From the NCBI GenBank assembly GCA_019828565.1, contig JAHDYR010000013.1:62001-126000 (forward strand): a stretch of DNA of 64,000 nt, read 5' to 3'. How positions within the stretch are numbered: the stretch's first letter is position 1; every line of letters begins with the position of its first letter. The notes under the pieces were generated by a model, which made no database searches, had not been told where the DNA came from, and worked only from the letters and a program-made list of their open reading frames with translations. Made by a program: the position numbers and the translations under genes. The DNA comes from Carpediemonas membranifera BICM. Its lineage: Eukaryota; Protista; Fornicata. Positions 1 through 62,733 of this stretch are shown piece after piece.

Positions 1-816
1 AACATGTCGCACATCATCACGGTAGCCCTGCCCGAGCCCCAACACCTGGCCGAGGTCGAGGGCAAGGGCTGGGCTGCCGCGGCGTACAGACTCAGCCTGG
101 GTCTGGACGGCGGGGCCACCGCCATCCAGCTCGAGTCCCGGCAGTTCAACACCAGGGCCGTCGCCGAGGGCTGGCTGGTGTCACTGGCCGGCAACCCCCT
201 CTACGTCCCGGCGGACGGCGTCTTCGACATCTCCGTCGAATCCTACTTCGCCCTCCCCGACGCCATCCGTGCCGAGCTCAAGGCCGTCATCGCCCCCGAG
301 CTCTCCTTCCACGGCCGGGCCGACCCCGCCGTCCCCGTCCACCCATACGTCGTCGGGGCCTGGCTCGGGGCCGCCTGGGACGACACCATGCCCGAGGACA
401 CCCCCGCCGCCGTCCTCGAGGCCATCGAGGAGCTCCTCCCCAACCGCGACCCTGTCGAGGCCATGCGTCCGAACGGCAAGCGCGTTCCCCCAGCCATCAA
501 GTACGGGCCCGCCGAGGCCCGGCGCCAGTGTCTGGCCGGCCTGGTCGACACCAACGGCTACCAGTCCGGCTCCAGGGGTCTGGTCGACGACGCCGCCTTC
601 ATGGCCCGCTCCTTGGGTCTGATAGTGACCAAGTCTGGCGAGATCACGGGCGACCTGACCCGCCTTCCTCTGCGGGTTGAGTCCAGTCGCCCCCAGCCTG
701 ACCACCACCGCCAGGCCTTCACGGTCGAGCGGCTGCCGGTGGACGACTACTACGGCTTCACCATCGACGGCAACAGACGGTTCGTCATCAACCACGAGAT
801 GGTCGTCACCCACAAC
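1..816 (+). mobile_element. Intein (C-terminal part) with degenerate LAGLIDADG homing endonuclease
   Basis: Block B-like NMSHIITV at 1-24, block C-like PYVVGAWLGAA, block E LAGLVDTNG, block H DAAFMARSLG, block F DYYGFTIDGNRRFV and block G VVTHN (Asn ends at 816), followed by Thr+1 at 817. Confidence 0.92.
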
Positions 817-2007
817 ACCGGCGCATTTGTGCTCCCGATGCTGGACAAGTTCATCGCCAACCCCGACCGCCCCAGCTTCTACTCGCTCGTGCTCGTCTCC
901 ACCAAGGAGCTCGCCGCCCAGATCGCTGGGGTCATCACCAGCGTCAGTAAGATCGTGGGGGAGCGGGTGAACGTCCTGACGCTGACCAGCGGTAAGCACC
1001 AGGGCAAGCCGTGCTTCATCGATCTCTCGGATAGGCCGCACTTTATCGTGGCGACGCCCGGCAAGCTGCTCGCTGAGTTCACAGGCCCCAACGGTGCCCT
1101 GATCAAGACGTACTTCAACAACCTGCAGTATCTGGTGCTCGACGAGGCTGACCAGCTTTTGAATAAGTCGTTCCTGGAGCAGATTCGGGAGATTATTTCC
1201 CAGATTCCGAGATCGGAGAACAGGGTGACCGCCCTCTTCAGCGCCACCATCGACGAGAAGGTTGCTCATCTGAGGAACATGGTCCTTGGCGAAGAGAAGT
1301 GGACGCTCGTCGAGGTCGACAAGGGCACCGTCGACACGCTGCGGCAGAGCAGGATTATGATCAGACGGAAGCACGAGGGCCTGCAGGATGTGATCCTCAT
1401 CCATCTCATGATGCTGAACGCCGGCCATAAGCACATCGTGTTCGTACCGACGAAGGAGGAGGCCGTCCGTGTGGCGCTGCTCGTCAACGCCTTCTGGGGC
1501 GAGGGCGCGTCCATGAAGGCCGTGCCTCTCTGCTCCCTGCTGGACAGAGACACGCGCATGGAGTACCTCAACCGCTTCGCCAACGGCACTGCCAATGTCC
1601 TGGTCGCGACGGACGTGGCCAGCAGAGGCCTCGACATCCCTTTCGTTGAGGTCGTCATCCAGTGCGACGTGCCCCTCAACCCCGAGCTGTACGTCCACAA
1701 GGTCGGCCGGACAGCGAGGGCGGGCAGGACGGGCAACGCCTTCCTGCTGGTGAAGGAGAGCCAGCTCGAGGACTTTGCCGTGCTGGAGCAGAGCTCGACC
1801 AAGCTCAATCTCAGGGAGAATCTCAAGCCCATGAAGATCTCAATAGATTCGATCCCCGCTGAGATTCAGAACAGGGTGAAGATCGCGGCAAAGATGGCCA
1901 AAGAAGCGGACGAGGAGCAGCAGACCACCGTCGTCAGCAAGGCCGTGGTTCATTACACCATGCGGGGCGTCAAGAGGGGGAAGCGTGTTCATAAGAAGAA
2001 GAAGTGA
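1..2007 (+). CDS. DDX47: DEAD-box RNA helicase (DDX47/Rrp3-like), intein-containing, 5'-truncated by window edge
   Basis: After the intein the frame reads TGAFVLPML..YSLVLVSTKELAAQI, VATPGKL, LVLDEAD, LFSAT, VATDVASRGLDIP, YVHKVGRTARAGR. The (GK)TGAF context resembles Rrp3/DDX47. The Q motif and GSGK are missing and must lie upstream of base 1. Confidence 0.8.
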   Translation, partial: NMSHIITVALPEPQHLAEVEGKGWAAAAYRLSLGLDGGATAIQLESRQFNTRAVAEGWLVSLAGNPLYVPADGVFDISVESYFALPDAIRAELKAVIAPELSFHGRADPAVPVHPYVVGAWLGAAWDDTMPEDTPAAVLEAIEELLPNRDPVEAMRPNGKRVPPAIKYGPAEARRQCLAGLVDTNGYQSGSRGLVDDAAFMARSLGLIVTKSGEITGDLTRLPLRVESSRPQPDHHRQAFTVERLPVDDYYGFTIDGNRRFVINHEMVVTHNTGAFVLPMLDKFIANPDRPSFYSLVLVSTKELAAQIAGVITSVSKIVGERVNVLTLTSGKHQGKPCFIDLSDRPHFIVATPGKLLAEFTGPNGALIKTYFNNLQYLVLDEADQLLNKSFLEQIREIISQIPRSENRVTALFSATIDEKVAHLRNMVLGEEKWTLVEVDKGTVDTLRQSRIMIRRKHEGLQDVILIHLMMLNAGHKHIVFVPTKEEAVRVALLVNAFWGEGASMKAVPLCSLLDRDTRMEYLNRFANGTANVLVATDVASRGLDIPFVEVVIQCDVPLNPELYVHKVGRTARAGRTGNAFLLVKESQLEDFAVLEQSSTKLNLRENLKPMKISIDSIPAEIQNRVKIAAKMAKEADEEQQTTVVSKAVVHYTMRGVKRGKRVHKKKK

Positions 2008-2271
2008 GTTAAATTATTGCGGATACGGACGTCATAAATGGTTGGGGTGGATCGATGAGCATCTCCGGCATACAATCTAGCTCCTTGATCTCGTTGCCCT
2101 ATTATTGCCAGTCCGGGGGTGCTGCCAGTGTGCTTACCCCATGGCATATCACATTATGATGCTGTGGGTCCAATTGCAGGCTGTACTTGACCCAGCTCGC
2201 TCTTGATCCGCTGAAGAGCGATTTGACGAGATCATTTCCCTGGCCACAAATCACTGTAGCCAGAAGTGTTG

Positions 2272-61637: not shown

Positions 61638-62733
61638 ATGTCAAGCATTGAGCAAAAGAAGGTTGAGAGGAAGCTCAAGAAGCTAAGAGAGAAGGTTGAG
61701 AATAAGACTTGCTTTGATTGCACGCAGCCAGCGCCGACGTACGTCTGCATGGACTTCGGAACTTTCGTTTGCACCAAATGCTCTGGAATTCAGTTCGTTG
61801 CCGCCGTTATTCTTATCTAGCCGTGAAAAGAACCGTGTCGTGAAGTCTGTTTCGATGGCACTTTTTACAATGGAGGAAGTTGATGCCATCATTGGCAATG
61901 GCGCCGCCGAACAGAAATGGCTCAAGGCCTGGACGCCCGAGGACCACAAGAAGCCCTCACCCGCCAACCCGGGCCAGGTACGGGAGTTCATGAGGCTGAA
62001 GTACGAGGTCAAGCGCTGGGCCCAAGCCGCCCCGACACAACCGACGCCCCAGCCCGCCCAGCCGAAGCCCACGCAGGTTCAGGAGGTCCCCAAGCTGGAG
62101 CAGAGCGACACAAAACAGGACCTGATGAACCTGTTCGGCGATTCCAAGCCCGCCCCTGCGTCTGAGGACCCATTCGGGTCCTTCTTTGACCAGAAGCCCG
62201 CCCAGCCACAGCCACAGCCCCAGGCCCAGGCCCAGACTCCTCAGAATGATCCGTTCGACGTCTTCGCCAAGCCAGCTTCCGCCGCCCCTGCTCGCACCAT
62301 CGCCCCAGCACCAGCCCCCACCCCGGCACCCAAGCCCGTGGACCCTCTCGCCGACCTCTTCGGCCCGCCAGTCACCCACACACCCGCCCAGCGGCCCCAG
62401 CCCCAGCAGTATCATGCCCCACCCAGACAGACGGACCCCTTCGCCTCTGAGTTCACCCAACCCGCGGCCCCCGCTCCGGCCCCGGCCGCACACGCCCATA
62501 GCTCGACACTCGACGACCTGTTCGCCACCCCCAGCCCTGCCCAGCCCGTGCACCAGCCGGCCGCCCAGCACAACCCCTTCATGCAGGTCCCGACCCAGCC
62601 TGCCTCCACCAACCCCTTCGCCGGCCAGGAGTTTACCTTTGATAACTCCCCCGCACCTGCGGCCCCTCAAGCTAGGGCTACTAACCCTTTCGACGACCTC
62701 TCTGATGCCGTCAACAGCATGATGTTCAACTAA
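61638..62733 (+). CDS. ArfGAP, AGFG/Hrb-like (1 intron)
   Basis: CFDC..FVCTKCSGIH|R across a 28-nt intron at 61793-61820; DPF/NPF-rich tail. Confidence 0.88.

Follow-up and report, generated by a model that had tools for sequence, protein, structure and literature searches.

How can a cell obtain a working DEAD-box RNA helicase from a gene whose ATP-binding loop is split by 996 nucleotides (nt) of in-frame sequence, and by what means is such an insert maintained? The question is raised by the beginning of a 64,000-nt stretch of the genome of the fornicate protist Carpediemonas membranifera BICM (hereafter the window; positions 62,001 to 126,000 of contig JAHDYR010000013.1 in assembly GCA_019828565.1, or G000:C14:62001-126000), which we analysed together with upstream DNA contained in locus L001 (C14:60501-64400). 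Eukaryotic nuclear inteins are a rarity, and most of those known come from VMA1, Prp8 and RNA polymerases. Judging from sequence comparisons, we consider it quite probable that the gene in question encodes a DDX47/Rrp3-like helicase precursor, the Walker A motif of which carries a self-splicing intein that is dead as a nuclease and has become a mosaic through gene conversion.

Frame 1 is open over positions 1-2004 of the window and continues upstream to an ATG at L001:1165. The resulting uninterrupted open reading frame (ORF) of 780 codons comprises an N-extein of 52 amino acids (aa; L001:1165-1320), an intein of 332 aa and a C-extein of 396 aa. The N-extein contains the Q motif (PYEVQ) and ends in AKTGSGK, directly after which, in frame and still upstream of the window, come Cys1 and splicing block A (CLAKDTPVLM). 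The first eight codons of the window read NMSHIITV, and the intein closes with DDYYGFTIDGNRRF (742-783) and VVTHN (802-816), followed by TGAFVLP (817-837). The initial annotation, which was drawn from the window alone, had counted 272 in-frame intein codons ahead of this Thr, had proposed that an intein splits the Walker A motif of a nuclear DEAD-box helicase, and had pointed upstream for a Q motif and a GSGK followed by Cys or Ser. The count is reproduced, the N-extein and block A are present where they were expected, and AKTGSGK, the intein and TGAFVLP lie in a single frame. Pfam recognises DEAD (108.9 bits) as two stretches flanking the intein, as well as Helicase_C (81.4 bits). The exteins hold the full superfamily 2 (SF2) motif set of DEAD-box proteins, namely PYEVQ, GSGK/T (the slash marking the insertion point), STKELA, TPGK, DEAD, SAT, LVATDVASRGLD and HKVGRTARAGRTG, and the sequence matches of the host in the PDB are generic DEAD-box proteins (CshA, DbpA, DDX54, Has1; E 1e-40). 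At the level of sequence, we thus regard it as confirmed that the host is a nuclear DEAD-box RNA helicase with an intein between the Lys and the Thr of its Walker A motif. The open frame is by itself weak evidence, because this GC-rich stretch also contains overlapping ORFs of 227-505 aa in other frames. Since it says little here, identification of the intein rests mainly on homology and fold.

Homology to inteins extends along the entire insert. The whole intein matches the Pfam family Hom_end_hint (PF05203) from position 1 to position 227 of a 228-position profile and scores 71.1 bits, the cut-off being 32.1, so that the profile search suggested by the initial annotation finds what it was expected to find, while the fragment inside the window alone reaches 16-18 bits and falls under the cut-off. 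A search with the intein region matched 323 proteins, including relatives outside the genome with E values reaching 1e-52. Among the best 120 of these outside relatives, 111 have complete boundaries, with Cys as first residue, HN as last and T or S as the next. Nearly all of the 120 interrupt their hosts between G-K and a T or S, in most cases within a P-loop, and the hosts include SF2 helicases, SNF2, AAA+, DnaB and terminases. The 111 start with CL[AG]KDTPVLM, end with VTHN, and share 25-32% identity with the window intein across its full length. In an alignment of 87 family sequences (A1), residues C1, T6, N61, H64, G312, F313, H331 and N332 are invariant. The window intein has all of these, and its blocks F and G read DDYYGF...VVTHN/T.

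An AlphaFold model built on A1 (predicted local distance difference test score, pLDDT, 93.6; predicted template-modelling score, pTM, 0.90) has as its best Foldseek matches in the PDB the structures 1dfa, 1jva and 1vde of PI-SceI (E 1e-19 to 1e-20; template-modelling scores 0.68-0.72), followed by further matches to Prp8, VMA and DnaB inteins and then to hedgehog Hint domains. Sequence and model together suggest a canonical class-1 intein of the PI-SceI type, with intact splicing blocks, which is very probably functional. PI-SceI itself (Saccharomyces cerevisiae VMA1; 1vde, 1dfa, 1jva, 1lws) shares the fold and the Hom_end_hint family with the window intein; both are nuclear-encoded class-1 inteins that begin with Cys1, end in His-Asn, and interrupt an ATPase in the region of its nucleotide-binding loop. 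They differ in length (332 aa in the window, 454 aa in PI-SceI) and in the +1 residue (Thr versus Cys), and are about 20% identical. Unlike PI-SceI, the window intein has a DEAD-box RNA helicase as its host, has lost both LAGLIDADG Asp residues, and lacks a beta-saddle in its model.

These last differences concern the endonuclease part of the element. Two LAGLIDADG motifs, approximately 63 residues apart, are recognisable in degenerate form, and the two replaced, metal-binding Asp residues are the counterparts of D218 and D326 of PI-SceI. The motif-1 Asp is missing from nine of the nine aligned Carpediemonas copies; at the motif-2 position they carry A, S or N, except for the XRCC3 copy, which is without motif 2 altogether. 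A Pfam scan of the full intein gave no match to Hom_end or to LAGLIDADG_3, and residues 158-296 of the model form helices only, with no beta-sheet saddle of the kind that binds DNA. We infer from sequence and model that the homing endonuclease is dead. With both catalytic Asp lost and no saddle, the intein would therefore no longer home by its own nuclease. Five DEAD-box paralogues in the genome keep an uninterrupted, uninvaded GSGKT.

If not by homing, how did the intein acquire its present sequence? Its closest sisters are found in two non-homologous genes, both of which are named as C. membranifera proteins in the databases: an SNF2 ATPase (C17; L048:4369-5358), where the intein lies between DDMGLGK and TIQ, and the alpha subunit of the signal recognition particle (SRP) receptor (C39; L049:4573-5568), where it lies between GVNGVGK and STSLAK. 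Remoter copies lie at this codon boundary too, in genes for an AAA ATPase, an SMC-like protein and an XRCC3-like protein, in two kinesin loci and in a very large ORF on C4. That the element belongs to a multi-copy P-loop family and has an apparently dead endonuclease goes beyond the initial annotation. The four closest copies (two in helicase genes, as described below, and one each in the SNF2 and SRP-receptor genes) are 96-98% identical to one another over intein nt 201-996. Over nt 1-200, the helicase pair and the SNF2/SRP-receptor pair are only 72% identical. Outside the intein, the flanks of the four copies agree only in GGCAAG on the 5' side and in one or two bases (A or AC) on the 3' side.

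This change within a single element is also seen at synonymous sites. In codons 1-66, comparison of the helicase inteins with those of the SNF2 and SRP-receptor genes yields a synonymous divergence (dS) that is saturated (>3; 35-38 of about 47 synonymous sites differ), a non-synonymous divergence (dN) of 0.15 and a ratio (omega) of about 0.05. In codons 67-332, dS falls to 0.05-0.09. Saturated codons 1-66 beside a remainder that is 96-98% identical identify the window intein as a gene-conversion mosaic. The helicase appears to have long carried an intein lineage of its own, and the divergence of its first codons points to strong, long-term purifying selection on the N-terminal splicing module. 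The near-identity of the rest indicates that it was recently overwritten, or homogenised, by what would be conversion between inteins of non-homologous genes. The SNF2 and SRP-receptor inteins, which are 99% identical over the first 200 nt and 96.7% identical beyond, show recent copying from one non-homologous P-loop to another in a more complete form; 6 nt are deleted from the SNF2 copy at intein nt 228-233. GC content at third codon positions (GC3) is 91% in the homogenised part, 74% in codons 1-66 and 86% in the C-extein, and is higher in multi-copy than in single-copy inteins. GC-biased conversion of inteins is suggestive only, because GC3 is also high in the C-extein.

The following sequence of events would account for these observations. 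The 780-aa precursor would be translated, and the intein would most likely excise itself by the standard four-step route. An N-S acyl shift at Cys1 would be followed by trans-esterification to Thr+1, Asn332 would then cyclise with the aid of His331, and an O-N shift would complete the reaction, by which the N-extein of 52 aa would be linked to the C-extein of 396 aa. We propose these steps because the catalytic residues are intact and purifying selection is evident. Ligation would restore AKTGSGKTGAF, which is required for ATP binding by the helicase, and protein splicing would consequently be needed to rebuild the GKT motif, as the initial annotation had suggested. The intein presumably persists because it is seldom lost precisely and because selection acts on its splicing. 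Host homologous recombination would allow it to swap sequence with the sister inteins in the SNF2 and SRP receptor alpha genes, and this exchange would produce the mosaic of 66 old N-terminal codons and a recently homogenised remainder. Metamonads lack non-homologous end joining and are thought to rely on homologous recombination (PMC8516963).

The helicase gene exists in two copies, both of which carry the intein, and a search of the genome found no intein-free copy. By blastn, C14:61623-64020 corresponds to C4:171288-168892 over 2398 nt with 96.9% identity. The duplicated segment includes 42 nt ahead of the ATG and 13 nt after the stop codon, and the flanks beyond it are unrelated. The second copy is represented by protein cluster P0001 (780 aa, 'Hom end-associated [Carpediemonas membranifera]'). 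Comparison of the copies gives a ratio of non-synonymous to synonymous substitution (dN/dS) of 0 for the N-extein, 0.07 for the C-extein and 0.35 for the intein, and the low extein values make both helicase genes look functional. The duplication could be small and segmental or RNA-mediated. The duplicated unit is almost exactly transcript-sized, and no trace of poly(A) was seen. Coordinates of the features of this locus are collected in Table 1.

Table 1. Features of the intein-containing helicase locus; positions refer to the window unless another coordinate system is named
Feature	Position	Strand	Basis or remark
Duplicated gene-sized segment, part within the window	1..2020	+	blastn of the two loci
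Whole intein, 332 aa	C14:61821-62816 = L001:1321-2316 = window -179 to 816	+	Hom_end_hint, fold model
Intein residues 61-332	1..816	+	residues 1-60 (Cys1, block A) lie in the 180 bases upstream of the window
Splicing block B, N-M-S-H (N61..H64)	1..12	+	N61 and H64 invariant in A1
Approximate recombination breakpoint, intein nt ~196-216	16..36	+	variable sites, sliding identity, dS
Degenerate LAGLIDADG motif 1, GAWLGAA vs family GLWLGDG, catalytic Asp to Ala	340..384	+	A1
Degenerate LAGLIDADG motif 2, LAGLVDTNG vs consensus LAGLIDSDG, catalytic Asp to Asn	529..558	+	A1
Splicing block F, DDYYGFTIDGNRRF	742..783	+	Y310, G312, F313 and G317 invariant or nearly so in A1
Splicing block G, VVTHN, with nucleophile Thr+1 (T of GSGKT)	802..819	+	H331 and N332 invariant in A1
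C-extein, 396 aa and stop (Thr + 395 residues)	817..2007	+	DEAD-box core; Pfam, PDB, best matches
DEAD-box motif Ia, STKELA	898-915	+	C-extein motif
DEAD-box motif Ib, TPGK	1054-1065	+	C-extein motif
DEAD-box motif II, DEAD	1141-1152	+	C-extein motif
DEAD-box motif III, SAT	1240-1248	+	C-extein motif
DEAD-box motif V, LVATDVASRGLD	1600-1635	+	C-extein motif
DEAD-box motif VI, HKVGRTARAGRTG	1696-1734	+	C-extein motif

Copies that are 96-99% identical at the same codon boundary of non-homologous genes might equally be expected of a homing element that is still active, in which the intein's own nuclease, or one supplied in trans by a sister element, cuts empty GK/T sites and the near-identical copies stem from recent, nuclease-driven ectopic homing. 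The existence of metagenomic relatives with full Hom_end and LAGLIDADG_3 domains, as well as the promiscuous nucleases considered by the authors of a study on Anaeramoeba inteins (PMC10710043), lends such a scenario some appeal. We nevertheless consider it unlikely, given that none of the nine aligned Carpediemonas copies retains either catalytic Asp, that Pfam reports no nuclease domain and the model no beta-sheet saddle, and that the five DEAD-box paralogues, with very similar GSGKT sequences, are still empty. Moreover, with its breakpoint inside the intein, the mosaic is more readily explained by conversion between resident inteins than by insertion of a whole element. Co-option of the intein as a redox or stress switch, acting through Cys1 to gate ribosome biogenesis in this anaerobe, is in our estimation very unlikely. 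The precursor must be inactive because the intein occupies the catalytic loop, both gene copies have retained it, and conditional splicing is documented for some prokaryotic inteins, e.g. RadA (PMC11409957). However, the sequence indicates no sensor, one and the same family of inteins occupies a dozen unrelated genes, which fits a selfish element, and target preference combined with the difficulty of precise loss explains the P-loop position across the family.

We attach the least credence to the proposition that the insert is removed from the RNA as an unusual long intron, or that the gene is a pseudogene with an unprocessed insert. Long open frames come easily in this GC-rich DNA, RNA evidence at the helicase locus is weak, and Carpediemonas not only has introns but carries one at this very boundary in two DEAD-box paralogues. 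Yet the boundaries of the insert are AAG/TGC and AAC/ACC, giving ends of TGC...AAC rather than GT..AG, and the introns seen in the genome (31, 31, 32 and about 75 nt) are of the GT..AG type, with conserved 3' motifs, and far shorter than 996 nt. Every splicing residue is retained in an insert homologous to inteins over its full length, and the low extein dN/dS argues for a working gene. Public annotation of the helicase (P0001) keeps the insert, and the annotation of C. membranifera was trained on intron hints from RNA sequencing (PMC8516963). Contigs from the public run X1, which holds both sequence variants of the helicase intein, pass the junction of intein and C-extein without joints in the C4 copy and in the SRP-receptor gene. 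Removal of the segment from the mRNA, the outcome that the initial annotation had held would overturn its proposal, was thus nowhere seen. Transcript-derived proteins of Dysnectes brevis (P0123, P0124, P0131 and P0421) likewise retain related P-loop inteins.

Returning to the spliced, nuclease-dead mosaic that we favour, several points weigh against it as well. Intein codons 67-332 have dN/dS values of 0.25-0.5, which amounts to relaxed constraint. Another element could yet have contributed a nuclease in trans, and conversion alone cannot account for the first entry of the intein into the helicase gene. Run X1 is the sole public run with the locus, and its N-extein junction lies outside the pieces listed; because it consists of contigs whose status as RNA is a guess, it neither proves transcription nor excludes RNA splicing.

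Assignment of the host to DDX47/Rrp3 is a further weakness, as it is not settled by the sequence data. Every named protein among the best 120 matches of the C-extein is a DDX47, RRP3 or plant RH10 protein (37-41% identity), and the nearest structure cluster of the host in the Atlas bears the name RRP3. To this extent the Rrp3/DDX47 label of the initial annotation stands. It is less secure as a statement of orthology, because a paralogue on C19 (P0240, 475 aa), the closest DEAD-box paralogue in the genome search at 38% identity, is also DDX47-like and shares the same best matches, and a quickly searched maximum-likelihood tree of 25 sequences has very long branches and leaves the orthology of the host without resolution. 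A DDX47 reference protein, used as query, gives several Carpediemonas paralogues equally high scores. We therefore do not single out the window helicase as the one Rrp3 orthologue, since the reciprocal search, the search with the C19 protein, the tree and pairwise blastp cannot separate the two. The best-scoring intein-free relative with an intact GSGKT, P0349 (GCA_002919055.1), is likewise not taken as an orthologous empty allele; it is equidistant from the window gene, the C19 paralogue and DDX47 references, and has no neighbouring genes in common with either locus.

The C19 paralogue is of interest for another reason. A 31-nt GT..AG intron (C19:241152-241182; L052:1470-1500) lies exactly between its GSGK and TGAF, and the public protein P0240 reads ...AETGSGKTGAFMLP... 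across the P-loop. A second DEAD-box paralogue, on C16, which we take from its motifs to be DDX3/Ded1-like, also has a 31-nt intron (C16:319677-319707; L058:1359-1389), at the boundary GSGK/TAAF, with motifs resembling those of the C19 intron. The K/T intron is absent from the DDX47 genes of Hypsibius, Coccomyxa and Polysphondylium, a small sample. A scan of the genome for P-loop introns with a strict pattern returned the two known cases only, and looser patterns returned a few candidates in which GK is followed by GT. In four of these (C1:1581915-1581962, C17:24236-24280, C54:1237553-1237588 and C3:137746-137791), GK codons, which may belong to P-loops, directly precede an intron-like GT...TTACAWAG. 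A gene for an Fe/Mn superoxide dismutase adjoins the window upstream (L001:251-970; C14:60751-61470) and has introns of about 75 and 32 nt. The 32-nt intron shares CCCATTT and TTTACATAG with the P-loop introns, and these are therefore ordinary intron signals here. In Anaeramoeba, introns have been described at or near intein sites in intein-free paralogues and suggested to block homing (PMC10710043). Whether the endonuclease-dead inteins of Carpediemonas spread and were homogenised between P-loops purely by host recombination, with the 31-nt K/T introns as a counter-move or footprint that would break the DNA homology or recognition site at the target and keep that paralogue intein-free, is a matter on which we are doubtful, and we offer the idea as a tentative one.

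Within the wider family, a quick tree groups nine Carpediemonas inteins, three from Dysnectes brevis and two metagenomic proteins in one clade (SH-aLRT 96), a grouping that should be read with the caveat of bias in amino-acid composition. Metagenomic P-loop inteins mostly keep Hom_end and LAGLIDADG_3 with both Asp residues, whereas the copies of Carpediemonas and Dysnectes, which branch together in a separate clade, have decayed nucleases. Two Joint Genome Institute (JGI) metagenomic proteins, P0139 (methionine aminopeptidase) and P0151 (Ser/Thr kinase), carry inteins of this clade after G-x-K or G-K and before S or T. Their names lie outside the usual P-loop NTPase families, and the family may therefore need only a site resembling GK followed by S or T. 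Some metagenomic proteins appear to hold more than one intein. In P0391 (1776 aa), two lie three residues apart in one P-loop (residues ~328-335), the order at the junction being ...VTHN, TGK, and then CHAKDT as the start of the next intein. P0372, P0406 and P0434 each have a pair of C-terminal intein junctions, at which VTHN or ITHN precedes S or T, and P0434 also has two starts in which GK is followed by C.

The nearest precedent is cluster 1 of the Anaeramoeba inteins, a group of nuclear metamonad inteins in the Walker A motifs of non-homologous proteins that was read as intragenomic transfer from P-loop to P-loop (PMC10710043; Gallot-Lavallee et al., PNAS 2023). The Carpediemonas copies resemble it in occupying GK/T or GK/S sites of a helicase, an SNF2 protein, an SRP receptor, an AAA ATPase, an SMC-like protein, a kinesin and XRCC3, and the K/T introns of two DEAD-box paralogues are a further likeness. 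Unlike the Anaeramoeba cases, the organism belongs to the Fornicata, the endonucleases look dead throughout, and the conversion mosaic has a mapped breakpoint. No Anaeramoeba intein occurs among the best 120 matches of the window intein, and neither 'DEAD' nor 'DDX' appears in the main text of that paper. Similarly, a 2018 survey of eukaryotic inteins (PMC5784728) makes no mention of DEAD-box or DDX hosts, and our literature search returned no paper on an intein in a DEAD-box RNA helicase or on any Carpediemonas intein. When the whole precursor was compared with 1.84 billion representative proteins, only its own cluster paired this intein with a DEAD-box core.

Two database entries come close. 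In P0421 of Dysnectes brevis, the host of which is presumably DDX41-like judging by motif, and in P0357 from an ENA metagenome, an intein sits at the same GSGK/T, and the helicase around it can be aligned with the present DEAD-box core. They differ from the window helicase in that their inteins are of another sequence type (P0421 starts with CFAPGT) and their hosts are different paralogues, and both are known as database entries only. Spread of inteins from P-loop to P-loop is thus known from Anaeramoeba since 2023, and what is added here is a DEAD-box host, for which we found no paper, together with the mapped conversion mosaic and the introns at the same site.

A helicase of the ribosome-biogenesis type hereby joins the enzymes for which protein splicing should be a precondition of activity, and Carpediemonas becomes a second intein-rich metamonad with a P-loop intein family. 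The four closest copies provide a clean molecular record, which indicates that inteins of non-homologous genes exchange sequence by conversion despite a nuclease that looks dead. Mutual exclusion between introns and inteins has been put forward as an idea for Anaeramoeba and Bathycoccus, and the same-site introns in two paralogues allow it to be tested in a second lineage. Should nuclease-free spread and an intron counter-move prove true, this genome would be a natural system for the study of nuclease-independent intein mobility and of the interplay between introns and inteins.

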